Source: Wallemia ichthyophaga EXF-994 (Eukaryota; Fungi; Basidiomycota). Taken from it: a DNA stretch of 32,000 nt. Shown here in pieces: positions 12,617-26,846 of this stretch. The stretch covers positions 292,592-324,591 of the forward strand of contig NW_008806278.1 in assembly GCF_000400465.1 (NCBI RefSeq), written 5' to 3'. The position numbers and the translations under genes are program-made. Positions within the stretch are counted from its first letter, which is position 1. Each line of letters opens with the position of its first letter. The notes beneath the pieces were generated by a model. It was not told where the DNA came from. It worked only from the letters and a program-made list of their open reading frames with translations, and did not search any database.

Positions 12617-13460
12617 CCTTTTAGGTACATATATCTTAATACTACTCTGTCTGTTGATAGTTAGATACAGGACCCAGGCTGAAGGTATGAACACATTGCA
12701 GCATCAGGAATTCCATGACAGGCTGAGTAACTGGTAATGCTGGTAATGCTCAAACGCGACTTACGAGGACGTAGGAGTTGATTGATGGTATCTATAAGAA
12801 TCTGCAGATGCATATGCCATAATTGAACCAAGACTTGGGCAGTATAACTGGGCTGGGTTGGGCTGGGCTATTGGATTGGCGCTGCTTCTGACTGATTTGA
12901 AGCGCCAGAGGATATAGCTCAACCAAACAAGCTATCAAAGCTGTTTATATTCAAGTTGTACTTGTCAGATATAAGGCAGTTCCCTTGAATTGTGACTGTG
13001 CAGTTTAAGTGACAGAAAAGTTTTCAAGGACTTTCGAAACTGTCTCCAAGTAAAATACTAGTCACCGCTGAAAAATACGCTTGGTACGAGGACGTGCACA
13101 CACAAAGGGTGACGTGATAAGAGATGTTACAAGGGGTGCAAGCGGTGCAAGGGATATAAAATGTGCCAAATAAACAGTGAACAGTACACAGGGATTCGAA
13201 AGTCTCTTATCTTTTATTCCTCTCTCTCTCTTCAATACACCCACCACCGCGTAATGAGATGAACGAATTTGCGATAAACGAGGCTTTTGAAAAACTATGG
13301 CAGGGTACTGCATACGGAAAGGTGTGTTTAACTATCAATTATCTTTAAATTGCCTTTGAATTCTTATTTTCCATCAAAGAGCCACGACGCGAAGCTTATC
13401 AATAAATATCAAGATGATACAGCGAATACTTCAAATGCAATCTCAAATTCCGCTAATATT

Positions 13461-16400
13461 ATGCCACCGCCGTCGTCTAAACCACTTAATCGATTATCAT
13501 ATAAGCCAATCACACCTGCAACAACTCCAACGAACGGTTCAGATCATCAACACCACCACCAACAACAACAACAACAGCAGCAGCAGCATCTATCACAGCT
13601 AGTACCACCACCACCTCAAACAGTTTACGTGATAAATCAAGTCAATCTCACTAACTGGTACATCTTACGTAGTCTCTCCCCTAATCACCAAGTTCAAATT
13701 ATTGTCTGTGGCTATGAAGTCAATTACTCATCCCAATCTCCAAAACTCCTTCGTTTCTTTGTTCTACATCGTGTTTCTGATAATGTCTTGATTGGAAATC
13801 GTGATGATGAGATTTTCAAGATTCAACTTATCGGTATGCTCGTACAGAAAGAGTGTAGAGGTTTTCCTGATTCCGTTGACGAATTCTTCATTAGTGGGTT
13901 TCCGGCGCTATGGGAGTTTATCCTGAGTAAAGCTGATGATGATAATGCTATCGAATCACTTCTGAGAGAGAAAAGAAGCAATACAGCTGTTAGCAATCCG
14001 TTACAACTCAACTCTTACCCAAAAAGTCTATCAACCCCAGAAGATATGGAAGATGTGAAGCCAATCATTTCCCCTCGCAAGTCCAGTGCTAGCAGTCAAG
14101 ATAAGCATGTTAATAAGAAATGGTTGAATGCTTTGCTCGAGAAGGAAAAAGAAAAGCGAAGGAGGCGAGATAAAGAGAAAATCAAGGAGGAAGAAAGAGC
14201 CAGAGAGGAAGATAGAGCTAGAGCGAAAGAAAAAGCTAAAGCGAAAGAAAAAGAGGAAACTAGGCGAAGGGAAATAGAAGAAACTTGGGAGAAAGAGAAA
14301 GAGGAAGTTAAGGAGAAGGAAAGAGAGGAAGCTAAAGAGAAAGAAAAAGAGAAGGCGCGAAAGAGGATTGAGAAAGAGAAAGCTAAGGAGGAAAAAGAAC
14401 GAAGGCGCGCAAAAAAGCGTGAGAAAGAAGAGAAGCGATCAGCTGAAGCATTAGAACGTCAAACACTTGAAGAGAAGCAAAAGCAAAAGCCGAACGAAGA
14501 AAAGCAAATGCGAAAACTCAATGAAGACAAAAGTATGCGACAAGAACGAATTGGATTGTTATTTGAAAAAAGCAAAAAATCAGAGGACAAATTGCAGGAA
14601 GATGTCGATAAACGTGCTGATAAGGAGAGAAGACGGCGTACGCTTCATGATGTACTGTCTAATGATAGAGTCCCACTAGCCAGTCAATCAAGACGAAGCC
14701 TTCTTCCTGCGAAGCTAAATGACAACGCAGATGATGAAACCAAACAGACGCTATCGAAACGCGAAGCAGCAAAAACAAGAAAGAGCGAGCCAACAAAGCG
14801 CATTGATTCGGAAAGAAAGGCTAGACGGAGTGACTTGAAAGATGGTGAGTATTGTCTTAGCGCTTCATACTATTAATGTTCACTGTTTTTAGAAGCAAAA
14901 CAAAATTCCAAAGTACAGGATCCCAAACAAGCTGAATCGTTTGAACAGATACCAGCCGACCTAATGGCCAGTCAGCATCAAATTCAGTCTGTGCATCCCG
15001 ACAAAGCTAACAACAACTCGAGTCACCACGACAAGAAATCTTTAAAGCGTAGAAAGAGACGTACAGATGACAGTGATAATCTATTCGCACTCAAGCGCAA
15101 GAGGACTACAGAGGATTTACAGCTTAACGAGGATGAAGAGTATCAGCGCAAACTTAAAGAATACGAAAAGAAAGTCGAGCTAGCGTGGACAGAGGAAGAG
15201 AATCGGCGAGAGAAAGAATATGAAGCTGAAAGACAGCGTTACTTGGAGACAGAGAGGAAAAAAGCAGAAGAGGAGCGTCGCGAAAAGGAATTTGAAGCAG
15301 AAAGGCAGCGCAAGTTGGAGGTTGAGAAACAAAAAGTGGAGGAAAGAGAACGTGAAAATGAACTTAAAGCCGCAAGAAGGATGTATTTGAATGAAAGAAA
15401 GATGTATCTGGATATTGAAAGCGAGAAGTGGAGAGTAGAAGAGATTAAGCGCGTACAGCAGATTCAAGCCGATATACAGCGCGCTCAGGAGAATGATGCA
15501 TTGACAAAGGAGGAACAAAGAGAGATACAAGACGTTTATATCAAGAAGGAAATTGAGAGAAATCTGCAGCTAAGAACAGAAAGAGTAAAGGAGAGTATGG
15601 CAAGATGGTTATGGGGTCAAGGCGCAAACAAAAGAAGGGCCCATCATAACAATTACTTTAGAGGGATCTTGAATGGTGAGAAGAGGTTGGAATCAGTGGA
15701 AGCCGTCTGACAGTATACTTTAGGTATGACAAAGTCTTCAACTCGAATGGTATTGCCATCGAAGACTTTTGCACATGCTCCTGGTCAAACTATGGCTAGG
15801 CATGAAGAGACTGCGGAAGGAATGAGAAGAGTATCATGGAAACAAGTATTTAAGCCAGCTCAATATAAATATCAATTAGATAAACAGACAAACGGCGAGC
15901 AAGAGGTGTACGAGGAAAATGGTGAACACAGCGAGCACGTAGATGATGAGAGAGTTAACGAAGCGATAGAGCACCATTCGAATGGGCATGAAATTAGTTT
16001 AACTCTCATTGGAGCTGATGCAGGAGCGCAAGCTGAAGGTTCAGAGCGGGAAGTGCGAGTAGAAAGACTGGATTCAGCAGAAGATGTCCAAGTGGAGCAA
16101 GATGACGCGGTTGAAGAGCACGTTGAATTGAATCAGCAGAGTCACAAGAGTCAGAAGAGTCATAAGAGCCGGAAGAGTCGTGCGAGTCATAAGAGTCAGC
16201 AACTCGAGGAAGGCCAATATGACAAACAAGATGAAGACGACCAATCACATAAGAAAAAGACTCTCGACAGCATTGTCATTAGTGAAAGTGAGGAAGATAG
16301 CAAAGACGGAAAGTCGGGAGCAGACGCAAACTTGTTGGCGTTTTCTAGTGATGATCCATTGGAAGAAAGCACAAACAGCAGAAATGATGAAGGCTTTCGA

Positions 16401-16469
16401 GCGCAAAGTCGTGCGGAGAAATGGGCCAATTACCCAAGAAGGAGTGCACGTCATGCAAAGAGGTCGTGA
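13461..16469 (+). CDS. Large Glu/Lys/Arg-rich coiled-coil and disordered protein of unknown function, 3 exons, ~970 aa
   Basis: Three ORFs of the track (13350, 14964, 15726) join in frame through two 48-nt introns: 14845-14892 (GTGAGT..TTTAG) and 15676-15723 (GTGAGA..CTGAC..TTTAG). First ATG is at 13461; the ORF-track start at 13350 is a TTG. Confidence 0.75.
13560..13586 (+). repeat. (CAA)5(CAG)4 microsatellite encoding polyQ9
   Basis: Read directly; preceded by (CAC)3. Confidence 0.9.
16140..16199 (+). repeat. Degenerate 9-nt coding tandem repeat (AGTCAyAAG-like, about 6.5 copies) encoding S-x-K tripeptides
   Basis: agtcacaag agtcagaag agtcataag agccggaag agtcgtgcg agtcataag agtcag = SHKSQKSHKSRKSRASHKSQ. 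Confidence 0.8.
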
Positions 16470-16627
16470 CTGACGCAGACCTGCATACACAAGCTAAACA
16501 ATTGTATAAAGTATATTTATATTGCATTGAACAAATTATGGTCATAGAATAAACTAAAGAGAGGTATTATAGAATGATCTGAAGTGAGTTGTTAATAAAT
16601 GAAGAAGGAATGCACTAGAGCAGTGAA

Positions 16628-16728
16628 GCAGGTATCAGAGGGGTTTGCCCGAAGATTGCGTTGGTTGGTACGGGCCATTTCCTCAAGCTGTATCGGAAGA
16701 CCGTCGTGATAAGACATCATGTAGCTGC
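16628..16728 (-). ncRNA. snR73: Box C/D snoRNA snR73/SNORD35 (25S Cm2959 guide)
   Basis: C box ATGATGT (16720-16714). The 12-nt guide TCACGACGGTCT (16709-16698) is exactly complementary to LSU rRNA AGACCGUCGUGA and is followed by T + D' CCGA (16696-16693). The +5 rule hits the first C of AGACC. D box CTGA at 16638-16635; GCAG/CTGC terminal stem. Confidence 0.88.
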
Positions 16729-16837
16729 CGAGACTGCTCTAGAGGCAAGAAGACTTACCGAAAGCGTAAGAAAAGCGTTTGCTAGGTCTAACAGATTAAT
16801 GTTAGTAGGAATTTTAACCAATCAGTCAAATCTTCCT

Positions 16838-16922
16838 CTATTCAGAAATCCACAATAACCTCAAGGCACTTGGCTCAGAGACTCTAGTTTGATATCGCGT
16901 AGATGTAGAGTCATCCACGAGG
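16838..16922 (-). ncRNA. snR78: Box C/D snoRNA snR78 (25S Um2421 guide)
   Basis: C box TGGATGA (16917-16911). The 13-nt guide TCAAACTAGAGTC (16892-16880) is exactly complementary to LSU rRNA GACUCUAGUUUGA and is followed by T + D' CTGA (16878-16875). The +5 rule hits the U of GACU. D box CTGA at 16845-16842; short CCTC/GAGG terminal stem. Confidence 0.88.
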
Positions 16923-16992
16923 GGGACGTGACTGATGAGTGAGTGTTGCTTACACTAGCAATTGTGTTAGTATGGGTGCTTGAGATATCTCA

Positions 16993-17072
16993 GGCGACTC
17001 AGTGTATTAAAAATACAGCCTTATTAGTATCGTCATGGTGATACGCCGGTAATTAATGTCATCTTTGTCGCC
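16993..17072 (-). ncRNA. snR77: Box C/D snoRNA, probable snR77/SNORD65 homolog (18S Um578 guide, shortened)
   Basis: Terminal stem GGCGAC/GTCGCC flanks a C-like box AAGATGA (17065-17059) and a D box CTGA (17002-16999). AATTACCG (17054-17047) is complementary to the conserved 18S CGGUAAUU, and the +5 rule from a degenerate D' (CGTA) points to the U of GGU. Only 8 bp of pairing, so the family call is tentative while the snoRNA call itself is stronger. Confidence 0.55.
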
Positions 17073-17086
17073 CTCATTAAACTCAC

Positions 17087-17202
17087 TTGATTGTTAAGAA
17101 TAGAGAAAATATTCTTCAAAAAACCGTTTTATACCCAAATAAAAAATAAAAAATGTGACAAGTGAAAATATTCATCGTTGCACACAAACAATCAACTTGT
17201 AA
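17087..17202. promoter_or_regulatory. Very short divergent promoter shared by the snoRNA host (minus) and homoserine dehydrogenase (plus)
   Basis: Only 116 bp lie between the host's first donor and the HOM6 ATG. The interval contains a minus-strand TATAAAA (17133-17127) and the A-tract AAATAAAAAATAAAAAA. Confidence 0.55.
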
Positions 17203-18364
17203 ATGGTTTTATTCAACGCAGCACAATCAACTCAGAAGACAGTCAACGTCGCTTTGATTGGCCCTGGCGGTGTTGGTAGTTGTGTGCTTGAGCAGCTGTC
17301 CAAGCTCAGTCAATTCAAGCTTATAAGTATTTCAAATTCAAAGGCAACTTACTTCAATCCATCTGGCATTCCTTTTCACTCCGCCAAAGCTGATTTGTCC
17401 AAAGCCACGCCTAAATCTATCGAGAAGGAGTTAATTCCTCAGTTATCGCAGCACCAGCCATGTATTTTCATCGACAACACCTCATCCGATGCTGTAGCCA
17501 GTCTCTACCCCGTTGCTCTATCCCACGGCGTGCACGTTGTTACACCCAACAAAGTCGGTTTCAGCGCGTCCCTCAGTCTCTTCAACCACATTAGAGACGC
17601 CAGCGCTGCTAGTGGTGCGTACGCATACAAAGAGAGCACAGTGGGCGCTGGATTGCCAGTTATTTCCACTCTCGAGACACTCCTCAAGACAGGCGACAAA
17701 GTAACCAAAATCGAAGGTGTCCTCTCAGGCACCATGTCATATCTTTTCAACACCTTCTCGAAACCAGGCACCAACGACGATATCCTCTTCTCCAAGCTTG
17801 TTTCTGATGCTCGCGACCAGGGATACACTGAACCCCACCCGGCATCTGATTTGAGTGGGAGTGACGTAGCGCGCAAACTCGCTATCCTCTCGCGTCTCGT
17901 ACCAGGTCTGGAAAACCGTCTCGAGGAGGGTGTGCACAGTGTGGATGTCGAGTCACTCATTCCGCCTGGCCTCGATGGTGACACAACCCCGGAACAGTTC
18001 TTATCCGGCCTCAAGCACCACGACGCTCATTACGAGTCTCTTAGGAAGACAGCCAGCGATGCCAATAGCGTGCTGAGGTATGTGGGCGTTGTCGACACCG
18101 CTGATGGCACCGTCAAGTGTGGTTTGGAAACGTGAGTCTGGTCTTTTTGATTGAATCTCGTCACACTGCTCTCATCTCACTCTCTTCTACAGTTACCCCG
18201 CTTCTCACCCCCTCGCTTCCCTCTCGGGCTCTGACAACATCTTCCTCTTTCACACTCAACGTTACGGCGCTCGCCCTCTTATTGTCCAGGGCGCTGGCGC
18301 TGGCTCGGACGTTACAGCCATGGGTGTTGTTGGAGATTGCATCTCTATTGCCGAGAGAGTCTGA
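17203..18364 (+). CDS. HOM6: Homoserine dehydrogenase, 2 exons, 366 aa
   Basis: Exons 17203-18131 and 18193-18364 (61-nt intron). Motifs: VALIGPGGVG (NAD binding), FIDNTSS, VVTPNK, ESTVGAGLP, GVLSGTMSY, GYTEPHPASDLSGSDVARK, QGAGAGSDVTAMGV. Confidence 0.95.
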
Positions 18365-18396: not shown

Positions 18397-20188
18397 CTAG
18401 AACTCGAACAACTGAGCAACAATATCACCTTGAATACTACCAATGGCGTTTTTCTCATCGACATCAGCAATGCTATCCAATTTCCGTTTGTGTCCTCCAA
18501 ACACACCTACACTCTTACCGTCGTAAGTTGCGGGGGTGGTCTTAATCTTACGGCGAATCTCCGTATCGAACATGGTTTTATAGGCATGATCGAGAAAGTC
18601 TTCGAGAGCGAAATTAGGTTTAGAGAAGACCTGTGAAAGAATGAGAGCTAATCTGTTAACGCTGCTATGGTAGTGAGATTGGTGCGATGCGAGTTCCCAT
18701 AAGGAGCTATCTAGAGCATTCGACTGCATAGGGTCAGGTTCATCGAAGGTGTACATGTCCGCATCTACACCCTGCACTGCGCGATCTGAGTGTATGAGGT
18801 GCATGCACCCCGGATGTCTTTTGAGGAGGTTGTAAGTGAATGGGATGAGCATCACTATGGCAGCTGGGCTGGCAGAAATGGATAGGCGACTGAGACGCTT
18901 GATGAAAGCTGCAACCAGTAACGCGGGAAGGTGCGTCGAACTCAGGAACAGATCTAACATACGGAAGAATCGCGCCCTGTATAGCACATGCAACACATTT
19001 CTGTCGCATAATGCATACAACCTTTTGTAGAAATCGGGGTAGTCGCTGAGTGCAAGTTTAGTAATGATTATTTGATTATAATCACATCACTCACAGATTG
19101 TGGTCGCGCATTAATCTCCATAGCGAATTGAGGGCGAGGAGAGCATTGACACCGCCAGCATCGCAGCAATCACTCAGCCAGTCTGCCAAACTAGCTCTTT
19201 CGGATGGCTTTAGGAATGGAATGACGAGCTGGTGGAGTACTATCAACGCCCTTCTGTTCTCATTCACATCTAACCCGGTCGGACACTTTAGCATCGTCAG
19301 CCAGACACCAGAGTACATGGCTCTGTGTGCACTGAGACTTATGGTGTCGCGCACTTTGTTTTTCTTGGAGTTCTTGTCAGTTGCTTTGCTCTCCTTCTCC
19401 TCCTCCTCGTCAGCGATCATCTGGTCAAAGTACGCAGTCCAGTCTTGGTTGTCTTGTTTAGACTGCTCGAGATTTGATTCCTTGACTTGCTCCTTCTCCT
19501 GTCTAGCTATCTCAGGGACCCAAAACTCGTCGATTTCAGATTGATGTGTAGGCATAGAGTGAAGATTTTCAAGCAAAGTCAGGACATTGGAAGTGAGGTG
19601 TTTTGGACGTGGGGAGGAGACCGCATCGAACTCTCTAAAGAGGTGTATTGTTTCCTTGAAGAAGAAGTAGCGGATGTCGTCGCACTTACCAATCCACTTG
19701 TCGAGCCACTCGCTGCGTACATCGTCGAACATGGGCTTCTTATTGATGAGCAAGGGTCTAACTATTCTGCGGAAGGAATCAATAGCGAATTGTGGAGAAG
19801 GTGGGACTGTCTTGTTTGAAATGTAGGATGATTCTGTGCGTAGTAGAGACATGGAAATGTGTAGAGAGGTAATTCTCAGGCTGTGTTCTGTGGAATGAAA
19901 GAGAGTGCCTAGAGTGTTGAAAAACCTCGTGTACTTGTCCAGCAACCATTTCTTAGTGAGAGTGATGGCTTCGTTGTCGGAGGTGGATTTCAGGCCGAGG
20001 ATTCTGCCATTGACGAGGAGCGTGCTGAATACCCTCTGCAGTACAAACAGCGTCTTGTGCTTCACTCTCCCGTCGACGCCATCGGCGTTGAGATAACCCA
20101 GCAAATCTTGTATAGGGTTGAGATCACTGAGAGAAGACAGCGATCTTTCAATTTCCAGTATTTTATCTGAATTTACCCTAAAACCCAT
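18397..20188 (-). CDS. NOC4: Nucleolar complex protein 4 (CBF/Mak21 domain; 40S biogenesis), 2 exons, ~580 aa
   Basis: Exons 20188-19095 and 19045-18397 (49-nt intron) give NLDYPDFYKRLYAL, YRARFFRMLDLFLSSTHLPALLVAAFIKRLSRL, NLLKRHP and SSLWEL. ATG 20188 has A-rich context; an in-frame alternative ATG sits at 20236. Confidence 0.9.
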
Positions 20189-20234
20189 TTTGTTTAAATT
20201 TATTTGGGTTGTTGGTGGTTGGGAGAAGACACTC

Positions 20235-20869
20235 ATGTTCGCATCCACGATCAGAGCAGGCGCGAGACGCACGCAGCTGACGACAAAGGGCGGAAACAAG
20301 GATTACTACAAGGGTGGGGCGGCTTAAAGTGTGTAGATAGACTGATTCTCATTAGAGCAGGCACAAGAACGGGATATATCGATGGGTACAGGACAGGGCC
20401 AGCGGGGAGGCACGCCGGGAAATCAAACAACACGTTCATCCTCGATGATTCAAAGGCTAGAGTGTTTGTAGCACCAGCGAATTTCCACAGCGGAGAAGCA
20501 CCTCTAAAGCCCTATGTCGAACGCAGTGCACAGATCGATAAGCCTTGGTCGACGCTCGTCACTGAAAATCTCTTCAAGCAGCACAACCCCAGCGCTGATG
20601 CAGAAGATGAAGCCAGGCGGTGTCTCGAGCCTGCAACGGAATCCCTCTCGCAGTACAAAGCACTCAAGGGCGGGCTGAACAAGAAGGATGCAAGTGAAGT
20701 ACGCCTCCTTCAACGCGCTTTCGGCGCCAAGAGAGTTTCCAAACTTCTCGAAAATAGGGTGAAGGGACCTTCGAAGCACTCGAGGAAGACATACGCATCC
20801 GCCATGGATAAAATCAAGTATAGGAGGATATTGGAGAGTGTACACAGTGTACAACAGGTATCTAACTAA
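20235..20869 (+). CDS. MRPL27: Mitochondrial ribosomal protein mL41, 2 exons, 195 aa
   Basis: Exons 20235-20313 and 20361-20869 (47-nt intron) give LTTKGGNKDYYKGTRTG..GRH..FILDDSKARVFVAP..LKPYV. The N-terminus is Arg-rich and presequence-like. Confidence 0.85.
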
Positions 20870-25201: not shown

Positions 25202-25251
25202 ATGATTCCCTTTCTTATGTATACATTGTATTTCTATGATAAATTTTTATG

Positions 25252-26292
25252 TTACAGTGATGGCTTTGTGAAGTTGACAATATTCAGCCCATGTCTGTGT
25301 CCATTCCACCATTCATGCGCACTGATTGCGTGCTTACCGGGCGGTTTGAGCGAGTGGACACGGAGGTAAGAAGAGCGAGCGCATTTGACGACGAGGTGGC
25401 TATCAATGAGGGAAGCTGAGCCTTCCACCGCGTTTGAGAAGGTGTCTGCAACAAGGCCATCACCACCCACCACCTCCACGCTGAGTAGCTGGTGCGTAGT
25501 GTTGGACTGTACCAGTGTAGCTGATAGTGGGCGCTGATGGCTGAAAGCGCGGTGTCTGCTGTCGATAGTCTCTGCCGCCATGCAAGCAAAGTCGACAAAG
25601 CCGACAGTTCTGCCTACTTTTGGTGCGTGTGTTATACGCGCTGTGTCCTGAGCGTACGAGTGTCGGATATAATGGTCGAGATTCTCCACCACCTCGGCCG
25701 CCATCTCGCCCGCCACCAGCCCGAGCTCCTTGGCGAGAGAGGGCGTAGTAGGTCTGTGCGAGGTGGACGACGAAAGCGGGTGAGTTCTCTGCAGGAGTAT
25801 TTCTCCGCTATCGAAGACGTCGTCCTGCATTGTTTGGATGCTTACGCCTGTCTCGCGCAGCTGGCGCGCAATGGCCCACTGGATCGGCGCTGCGCCTCTC
25901 AGTGCCGGCAGGAGGGACGGGTGGACATTGATGGCGTGTTGCGGGCGCACGGCGCGCAGCAGCTCGGTGGGCAGCAGGTGTCCGTATGAGGCTGTCAGTA
26001 TGACGTCGAGTGCGGGCAGGTGGCTGGCCATATGCGGTAGCTCACCGGCAGTGGGTGTGTATGTAGGGAGTTGCAGCTGTTGCGATTGCTCCAGTAGCGG
26101 CGGCACGCGTAGTTGCTTCTTTCCTCGCCCCGTTCTAGCTGGTGCTGGTGTGATGACTGATAGTTTGTCTACGTCTCCTCTGCCGTCGCTTTCTTGCTTA
26201 AGTCCACTACACCGCCTCCGCCATACCGCTCGCAGCACATCCACAGAAAAATCGTCACTCCCTAGGAAGAGTATGTGCAGTGGACGTCGCAT
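25252..26292 (-). CDS. FMT1: Methionyl-tRNA formyltransferase (mitochondrial type), ~346 aa
   Basis: ILFLGSDDFS, TASYGHLLP, INVHPSLLPALRGAAPIQWAI, ETGVSIQTM, FDSGEIL. First ATG is at 26292; the ORF-track start at 26304 is a TTG. Confidence 0.92.
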   Translation of the reverse strand: MRRPLHILFLGSDDFSVDVLRAVWRRRCSGLKQESDGRGDVDKLSVITPAPARTGRGKKQLRVPPLLEQSQQLQLPTYTPTAGELPHMASHLPALDVILTASYGHLLPTELLRAVRPQHAINVHPSLLPALRGAAPIQWAIARQLRETGVSIQTMQDDVFDSGEILLQRTHPLSSSTSHRPTTPSLAKELGLVAGEMAAEVVENLDHYIRHSYAQDTARITHAPKVGRTVGFVDFACMAAETIDSRHRAFSHQRPLSATLVQSNTTHQLLSVEVVGGDGLVADTFSNAVEGSASLIDSHLVVKCARSSYLRVHSLKPPGKHAISAHEWWNGHRHGLNIVNFTKPSL

Positions 26293-26846
26293 GTAGACGG
26301 TCAACCAACAAGACCCATCATACCACAGCTACCAACGCTTTCTCAACAATTGATCAATATATTCATTTTTATGGACAAGAAAGCTGTGAAAATAAAAAGA
26401 TACTTGCGTTTATTGGTGAAAGAGAAATCCGTGAAAAGGTTAAGTGGCTTGTCTAAACATACTTTACCCAATTGCCTGCTCAAGGTGACTATAACGTCAG
26501 CCACTGTCTAATAAAAACAAATCGTTGTAGCCACGGGCAGGGGGGAGGGTTTTAAGAAAGAAGAAAAAGATGAGACCAATAGTGAATGAGAGTGTTGCTT
26601 TTGAAAGATACTTCATTTCCCATATCAATCGACTCGACGCGTCTTAGAAAGAGTGAAGGGATTGACAGAGCAAATTGGGAGTTCCTTTAAAAACTATCAG
26701 AGATTTCTCTCTGGCGTTGCGTTGGCGTTTATAGGTTGAGCCATCACAGTGTCTGTGAGATTTGAGATTGTCTGGTAAAATTGCGTTAGTTTAGTGTGTT
26801 AGCCAACTAGCCACTCACTTGAATAGCGCCAGCGTAAGCTAGACCC

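Follow-up and report, generated by a model that had tools for sequence, protein, structure and literature searches.

A putative short non-coding gene with three intronic box C/D snoRNAs in Wallemia ichthyophaga

What does the 733-nt intergenic gap at positions 16470-17202 of a 32,000-nt stretch of the genome of the halophilic basidiomycete Wallemia ichthyophaga EXF-994 (contig NW_008806278.1; hereafter the window) encode, and how would its products be made? The gap is convergent with a SANTA-domain gene and divergent from a homoserine dehydrogenase gene, and protein-based gene calls (W. mellicola at NCBI; Logan and ENA assemblies) record nothing in it. This agrees with a first-pass annotation of the window, which had placed a gene on the minus strand of the gap and held that protein-centred annotation would miss it; the non-coding gene and the three small nucleolar RNAs (snoRNAs) described here appear to be unannotated. 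The most probable answer, to which we assign a probability of roughly 85%, is that the locus is a short non-coding host gene with three introns, each carrying one box C/D snoRNA, whose transcription, splicing and methylation activity are predicted from the sequence.

Three box C/D cassettes and their predicted targets

Targets were read on a panel of 120 rDNA-containing metagenome contigs, with the ITS3 primer sequence as search pattern. Two of these (L066 and L103, JGI/ENA metagenome contigs) have an S. cerevisiae-type internal transcribed spacer 2 (ITS2) and 18S/25S numbering and served as the yeast reference, and a third (L049) is a complete eukaryotic rDNA unit. The ITS2 of L066 is recognisable as that of S. 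cerevisiae. The numbering of L066 gives the correct base at 39 of the 39 known 2'-O-methylated (Nm) positions that lie within it (site list of PMC8307265). The comparison between species was anchored on homoserine dehydrogenase and covers W. mellicola (83% identical protein), L009 (85%; first 275 nt upstream only) and, from ENA metagenomes, a Wallemia-like lineage that is more distant, here called W6 (L006-L008; 74%).

The three cassettes, numbered in the direction of the minus strand, all have CUGA D boxes and terminal stems of 4-6 bp. Compared to RUGAUGA, the C boxes AGAUGA and GGAUGA of snoRNAs 1 and 2 keep both GA and have the U at position 2 replaced, while UGAUGU of snoRNA 3 keeps the first GA only. 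When a guide is taken as at least 10 nt ending 1-2 nt before the D or D' box, with the target nucleotide opposite position 5, the pairing spans 13 bp in snoRNA 2 and 12 bp in snoRNA 3; in snoRNA 1 it spans 8 bp (12 bp in W6).

SnoRNA 2 (88 nt, 16835-16922, minus strand; terminal stem CCUC/GAGG) is assigned to the snR78/SNORD52 family by its guide and its SNORD52 match. It comprises the C box GGAUGA (16916-16911), a conserved block CUCUACAUCUACGCGAU, the D' guide UCAAACUAGAGUC(U) (16892-16879), the D' box CUGA (16878-16875), the C' box UGAGGU, and the D box CUGA (16845-16842), which is preceded by an invariant D guide UGUGGAUUU. The D' guide forms 13 Watson-Crick bp with GACUCUAGUUUGA of the large-subunit (LSU) rRNA, with position 5 facing the U of GAC-U-CUAG. 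At a 12-mer nearby that both share, the numbering of L049 runs 50 ahead of that of yeast, which places the target at U2421, the site of snR78. The guide has the same sequence as the SNORD52 consensus ACUAGAGUCUCUGA, and SNORD52 (Rfam clan CL00063) matches in three lineages, in the window with 21.4 bits and E 0.064 (E-value mode, gap); the scores of 21.4-26.7 bits across lineages do not reach the gathering score of 45 and are carried by the guide and boxes only.

For the D guide UGUGGAUUU of snoRNA 2, and for the invariant block CUYUACAUCUACGCGAU after its C box, no convincing target was found on the rDNA panel. The only exact complement of the D guide, AAAUCCACA at about position 1802 of the S. 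cerevisiae 25S rRNA, was rejected because this stretch varies among fungi, and A876, G908, A817 and U898 were ruled out by comparison with S. cerevisiae-type rDNA. The D guide is neither that of snR72 (A876) nor that of snR60 (G908), which are paired with the snR78 guide in double-guide RNAs of ascomycetes (PMC2780460, PMC5824354).

SnoRNA 3 (101 nt, 16628-16728, minus strand; terminal stem GCAG/CUGC) is placed in the snR73/SNORD35 family by its guide and its SNORD35 match. Its C box is (A)UGAUGU (16720-16714), followed by the D' guide UCACGACGGUCU (16709-16698), the D' box CCGA (16696-16693), the C' box UGAGGA and the D box CUGA (16638-16635), with a conserved internal hairpin GCCCG...CGGGC; a D' box that is divergent yet conserved has been described for yeast snR73 (PMC3116282). 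The guide forms 12 Watson-Crick bp with LSU AGACCGUCGUGA, and its position 5 faces the first C of AGA-C-CGUCG. The bases 11, 13, 37 and 38 nt upstream of this target are C, A, G and U, matching Cm2948, Am2946, Gm2922 and Um2921 (sites of PMC8307265), and the target is therefore C2959, the snR73 site. The guide UCACGACGGUCUUCCGA is close to the SNORD35 consensus UCACGAUGGUCUUCaGA. The match to SNORD35 (clan CL00056) has 26.7 bits, short of the gathering score of 36, with E 0.0012 in the gap and 0.046 window-wide, and is the only window-wide Rfam match with E below 0.1; here, too, guide and boxes account for the score. In Neurospora crassa, the snR73/U35 homolog CD31 has the same length of 101 nt, and the D' guide of CD5 is that of snR78/U52 (PMC2780460). 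In W6 the hairpin loop of snoRNA 3 forms 12 bp with LSU GGUAAGCGUUGG, starting 49 nt upstream of where the guide-target duplex begins; 4 of 500 shuffles reach this, and it is the only accessory pairing that proved significant. In W. ichthyophaga 7 bp of it are left, and it is not significant. The first-pass annotation had reported perfect LSU complements of 13 and 12 nt, with the +5 rule pointing to Um2421 and Cm2959, and had named the two RNAs snR78 and snR73; both complements were found again at these sites, and guide identity and best Rfam matches lead to the same two families.

SnoRNA 1 (80 nt, 16993-17072, minus strand; terminal stem GGCGAC/GUCGCC) is a box C/D RNA of snR77/snoR77Y-like type, with the C box AGAUGA (17064-17059), the D' guide AAUUACCG (17054-17047), the D' box CGUA, the C' box AUGACGA, a conserved block UAAGGCUGU (17023-17015) and the D box CUGA (17002-16999). 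The guide forms 8 bp with 18S CGGUAAUU, where the +5 rule gives U578, the snR77 site (PMC8307265). Its W6 ortholog (contig L006, 2016-2107, minus strand) has the D' guide UUGGAAUUACCGA followed by CUGA and pairs over 12 bp with 18S CGGUAAUUCCAG, with 11 Watson-Crick pairs, one G-U pair and position 5 opposite U578 of the S. cerevisiae-type rDNA. The Rfam family snoR77Y (clan CL00057, snR77/snoR77Y/SNORD65), the plant homolog of snR77, matches the W6 RNA with 37.6 bits (E 2e-5), which is below the gathering score of 52, and the W. mellicola RNA with 19.3 bits; it is unlisted for the window, where snoRNA 1 has only generic C/D matches. Because the W6 ortholog combines the snoR77Y match with 12 bp around U578, the label 'snR77-like' that the first pass gave to snoRNA 1 is upheld.

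In W. ichthyophaga, L009 and W. mellicola the guide reads CAUUAAUUACCGG, of which 8 bp (AAUUACCG) are kept in the same register as in W6, next to a D' box CGUA or CAAA. The snR77-type guide of this clade (window 17047-17058, minus strand) is 6 nt shorter than that of W6, with AAUUGGAAUU reduced to AAUU, and a loss between direct AAUU repeats looks like replication slippage that would then have been fixed. The block UAAGGCUGU, located between C' and D, is invariant, and its distance from D varies. It contains GGCUGU, a potential pairing partner of 18S GCAGCC directly 5' of the U578 duplex; the snoR77Y consensus has a comparable CUGGCU element. Accessory pairing near target sites stimulates methylation in yeast (PMC3116282). 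That the GGCUGU-GCAGCC pairing aids the methylation of U578 is put forward only as a hypothesis; in a shuffle test, accessory pairing by the blocks of snoRNAs 1 and 2 and by the W. ichthyophaga sequences was not significant. No alternative rRNA target of at least 10 bp was found for snoRNA 1 on the rDNA panel, and a target for its D-side region was rejected, as the matches are only G-U-rich and their sites differ between lineages.

By our own estimate, chance would yield about 0.1-0.4 rRNA complements of 12-13 nt per window at the correct place before a D' box. Two such complements at known sites, adjacent to each other and accompanied by boxes, stems and conservation, are thus not explained by chance. 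A snoscan-like scan of the window for complements of at least 11 nt before NTGA returned snoRNA 2 and a few matches at chance level (about 6 expected).

Conservation and splice signals of the host gene

In the alignment the three cassettes are almost unchanged blocks, separated by sequence that can barely be aligned. Boxes and guides are kept nearly invariant in all available cassettes of up to four Wallemia lineages, and splice donor, branch site and acceptor surround each cassette in every lineage examined. The terminal stem of snoRNA 1 reads GGCGAC/GUCGCC, AACGAC/GUCGUU and GGUGAC/GUCACC in three species, so that three of the six pairs are changed on both sides while 100% of the cells pair, a result equalled by 18 of 500 shuffles and by none of the slid registers. 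By inspection, the terminal stem of snoRNA 2 is kept by other sequence in W6 (GCACUA/UAGUGC), and that of snoRNA 3 is GCAAA/UUUGC in W. mellicola and A/U-rich in W6. Such a pattern is what would be expected of functional snoRNAs in functional introns. For snoRNA 1, the altered guide that is identical in three species and the covarying stem indicate that this RNA is still under selection.

The predicted gene begins with a short exon 1 (17087-17105, minus strand) that ends at the donor GTGAGT at 17086; its 5' end at 17105 is a guess from the position of a candidate TATA box. This element, TATAAAA (17127-17133, minus strand), would function within a 116-nt divergent promoter region that the host gene shares with the homoserine dehydrogenase gene; it lies about 45 nt upstream of donor 1, and TATA-like elements are found about 45-50 nt upstream in W. 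mellicola and W6 as well. Intron 1 (132 nt, 16955-17086) extends from the donor GTGAGT through the branch site TACTAAC (16972-16966) to a TAG ending at 16955, and the same three signals are found in W. mellicola, L009 and W6. Exon 2 would consist of a single T at 16954, between this acceptor and the donor GTAAGC at 16953. Intron 2 (166 nt, 16788-16953) has TACTAAC at 16807-16801 and a TAG ending at 16788, with equivalents in W. mellicola and W6. It is followed by exon 3 (29 nt, 16759-16787), whose sequence is not conserved and whose counterparts in W. mellicola and W6 measure 34 and 43 nt. Intron 3 (180 nt, 16579-16758) starts with GTAAGT at 16758, has TTAAC/CTCAC as branch site and a CAG ending at 16579; its counterparts are TATTGAC...TTAG in W. 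mellicola and TACTAAT...CAG in W6. The terminal exon (16480-16578), of predicted extent, is A/T-rich with TATATA/AATAAA-like elements and is convergent with the SANTA gene.

Exactly three GTRAGY hexamers occur on the minus strand of the 733-nt gap (17086, 16953 and 16758), where about 1.1 are expected. Each intron holds one box C/D cassette, at distances of about 38, 47 and 49 nt from the snoRNA 3' end to the 3' splice site (3'SS), and the spliced model of about 150 nt has no open reading frame (ORF) of note. The coordinates and signals that the first-pass annotation had listed for the three minus-strand introns proved exact when the minus strand was reread; of the spliced junctions that it claimed, the signals stand and are conserved around each cassette, while splicing itself is a prediction.

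The exon between introns 1 and 2, which the first pass had passed over, makes the two introns juxtaposed: at TAG-T-GTAAGC (16957-16948) a single nucleotide separates the 3'SS from the next 5' splice site (5'SS). The 10-nt junction CTAG-T-GTAAG (CTAGTGTAAG) is identical in W. ichthyophaga and W. mellicola. Elsewhere the exon is CAG-TT-GTAAGC in L009 (2 nt) and TTTTAG-TTGT-GTAAGT in W6 (2-4 nt), which gives a range of 1-4 nt across lineages.

Proposed biogenesis and competing explanations

The following sequence of events would account for the locus. RNA polymerase II would transcribe the host gene from the minus strand, starting at a TATA promoter divergently shared with the homoserine dehydrogenase gene, into a primary transcript of about 0.6 kb that is almost entirely intron. 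The introns would be spliced out and their lariats debranched, after which exonucleases would trim them back to the snoRNP, which the terminal stem and the C/D kink-turn would shield. What is left after splicing (exons of about 15 + 1 + 29 + about 100 nt) is predicted to be non-coding and presumably discarded. The resulting snoRNPs would direct 2'-O-methylation, snoRNA 2 at LSU U2421, snoRNA 3 at LSU C2959 and snoRNA 1 at 18S U578, the latter with weak pairing in W. ichthyophaga. Because exon 2 has only 1 nt, introns 1 and 2 could not be occupied by spliceosomes simultaneously and would have to be removed one after the other. Removal of intron 1 first would leave donor 2 intact behind the new 5' exon, and 5'-to-3' removal of these two introns is the most likely order.

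Several observations weigh against this account. The targets were read on S. cerevisiae-type and other eukaryotic metagenome rDNA and not on Wallemia's own rRNA. In snoRNA 1 the C box (AGAUGA; GGAAGA in W. mellicola) is non-canonical, the D' box (CGUA/CAAA) departs from the consensus and the guide spans 8 bp only; in W. ichthyophaga this RNA may fail to methylate U578, so that its activity is uncertain. The 1-nt exon is unusual, and a pairing of donor 1 with acceptor 2 instead is conceivable. At the gathering score, Rfam gives no match in the whole 32-kb window. The last point is no evidence against the snoRNAs, because E-value mode recovers the right families: the Rfam support that the first-pass annotation had looked to is absent at the gathering score and present below it, with SNORD35, SNORD52 and, in W6, snoR77Y as best matches. 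At this locus Rfam is simply insensitive.

As an alternative, the snoRNAs would be real but released otherwise than by splicing, from a polycistronic or independently transcribed unit that is cut by an endonuclease of the RNase III/Rnt1 type and trimmed by exonucleases, and the splice signals would be unused relics. The homologous snR72-78 cluster of S. cerevisiae is processed unspliced (PMC3596301, PMC3116282), the Wallemia junctions are predicted ones, and a spliceosome would not easily handle an exon of 1 nt. We nevertheless consider this improbable, in view of the donor, branch site and acceptor that are retained around every cassette in four lineages despite unalignable surroundings, of the junction shared by W. 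ichthyophaga and W. mellicola in a region with only three donor-like hexamers, and of the report that outside Saccharomyces and its close relatives such clusters are intronic throughout or for the most part, and in Basidiomycota without exception (PMC3596301). Far less credible is the explanation that the conserved blocks serve the flanking protein genes as promoter or regulatory elements and that the resemblance to C/D motifs is a coincidence. The gap is indeed the promoter-proximal space of the homoserine dehydrogenase gene, but regulatory elements leave unexplained the 12-13-nt complements at two known sites, the D' spacing, the boxes, the compensatory stems and the matching Rfam families, and the guide and covariation evidence effectively refutes this explanation.

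A narrower alternative concerns snoRNA 1 only, with snoRNAs 2 and 3 functional: in the clade of W. ichthyophaga and W. mellicola it would have lost the snR77 function and become an orphan with another target or a role other than methylation. In its favour, the guide has lost 6 nt relative to W6 and pairs over 8 instead of 12 bp, the D' box CGUA/CAAA replaces CUGA and the C box deviates; the snoR77Y score falls from 37.6 bits in W6 to 19.3 in W. mellicola, with no listing in W. ichthyophaga; and no alternative rRNA target of at least 10 bp was found. On the other hand, GACAUUAAUUACCGGC, the block UAAGGCUGU and the compensatory terminal stem are conserved in three species of the clade, which argues for continued selection, and GGCUGU has a possible partner in GCAGCC 5' of the U578 duplex, an accessory pairing of the type known to support methylation in yeast (PMC3116282), here without significance. 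Loss of the snR77 function is therefore a possibility that we regard as rather unlikely. Within the host-gene reading, we tentatively suggest the converse for snoRNA 1, with doubts of similar size: its 8-bp guide would still direct Um578 by means of the accessory GGCUGU-GCAGCC pairing, and the 1-nt exon would enforce an ordered, recursive-type removal of introns 1 and 2. If true, this would be the first such case described in a basidiomycete and, for guide and exon alike, a natural example of minimal length.

Known clusters and the surrounding genes

Outside the Saccharomyces group, intron-encoded clusters of the snR72-78 type in non-coding host genes resembling UHG and GAS5 have been described for most fungi, three basidiomycetes among them (PMC3596301, PMC2780460), and the intron-encoded cluster I is also dealt with in a fungal-wide survey that took in Wallemia sebi (PMC5824354). 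The juxtaposed introns of such clusters are spliced 5'-to-3' in Debaryomyces hansenii, Yarrowia lipolytica and the Euascomycetes (PMC3596301, section 8), and an exon of zero length has been described in the Schizosaccharomyces pombe snoRNA host gene SPNCRNA.445, again with 5'-to-3' removal (bioRxiv 10.1101/226894). Since both intron-encoded clusters and juxtaposed introns have been described in fungi, the locus is of a kind already known. The first-pass annotation had described it as a reduced, reordered and intron-encoded form of the yeast cluster; the three members and the order snR77-like, snR78, snR73 were found as stated, but its novelty was overstated, as the intron-encoded form is documented in fungi.

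The predicted gene resembles the intron-encoded cluster I of N. crassa, Candida albicans, Y. lipolytica, Euascomycetes and Basidiomycota in its non-coding host without an ORF, its one C/D snoRNA per intron, its canonical fungal splice signals, its short and poorly conserved exons, and its snR77, snR78 and snR73 members with the same D' guides. It differs in having three members, in the order snR77-like, snR78, snR73, whereas snR78 comes first in ascomycetes, and in the absence of snR76, snR75, snR74 and snR72 from the Wallemia locus and the 32-kb window at the sensitivity of the scan. The S. cerevisiae snR72-78 polycistron contains the same families with the same targets Um2421, Cm2959 and Um578 (PMC8307265), but is intron-less, with an unspliced precursor and seven snoRNAs instead of three; its intron-less nature had been pointed out in the first pass, in line with the literature (PMC3596301, PMC3116282). 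Like the juxtaposed introns of the Candida clade, Y. lipolytica, Euascomycetes and Schizosaccharomyces, those of Wallemia have a 3'SS that adjoins the next 5'SS and a junction conserved among relatives, but they keep 1 nt (1-4 nt across lineages) where the other fungal host genes keep none. Exon loss has been counted in Hemiascomycetes, Euascomycetes and Archiascomycetes, and Basidiomycota are not listed (PMC3596301). The vertebrate UHG and GAS5 are likewise non-coding spliced hosts whose useful products are intronic snoRNAs; the Wallemia host, with about 0.6 kb and internal exons of 1 and 29 nt, is far more compact.

Specific to the Wallemia locus are thus the reduced set and its order, the linkage of the families, the truncated snR77 guide, the orphan D guide carried by snoRNA 2 and the 1-nt exon. 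The origin of the snR72-78 cluster is placed at the root of the Ascomycota, with the genes dispersed in the dikaryan ancestor, by PMC5824354, whereas PMC3596301 has the cluster present in Basidiomycota, and the linkage of snR77, snR78 and snR73 in a basidiomycete class that branched off early is useful evidence on this disagreement. The locus also offers two small natural experiments, a methylation guide cut to 8 bp yet under selection and an internal exon reduced to 1 nt, and leaves the general picture of snoRNA biology unchanged.

No candidates for guides to A28, A876, C2197 or G2288 were found in the 32-kb window, so that at the sensitivity of the scan the other cluster members are not in it. 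A separate match lies at 25250-25325 on the plus strand, where CCAUUCAUGCGC, with A and CUGA after it (box at 25322), is perfectly complementary to LSU GCGCAUGAAUGG over 12 nt. The predicted target would be C2308 in yeast numbering, a position that is not among the known yeast Nm sites. The match shares sequence with the 3' end of a minus-strand ORF (25252-26304) and has no convincing C box or terminal stem; as about 0.4 such matches are expected by chance, it is probably a coincidence.

The order SANTA gene, gap, homoserine dehydrogenase and NOC4 is retained in all Wallemia loci fetched. The SANTA-domain gene on the plus strand, the left neighbour of the gap, ends at 16469. The region 13350-16469 (plus strand) holds three consecutive ORFs (508, 248 and 247 aa), of which only the first has a Pfam match (SANTA) and which correspond to a single gene of 1021 aa in the W. 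mellicola annotation; the region is strongly biased towards purines and towards A over T (AT skew up to 0.46, GC skew up to 0.31), which fits a long acidic or lysine-serine low-complexity tail. On the other side, the first exon of the homoserine dehydrogenase gene is the ORF 17203-18135 (plus strand), which is 100% identical to the W. ichthyophaga protein and is followed by a 61-nt intron GTGAGT...CAG, with the same form of donor as intron 1 of the snoRNA host. At residue 264 of this enzyme (around 17990, plus strand) the window has PEQFL and the NCBI W. ichthyophaga protein PEEFL, a strain difference of one residue. Further on, the minus strand carries a NOC4 homolog (18397-20299; TPR_NOC4 and CBF/Mak21 domains) as two ORFs (19091-20299 and 18397-19020), presumably split by an intron, and a ribosome-biogenesis gene is thereby found close to the snoRNA host gene.

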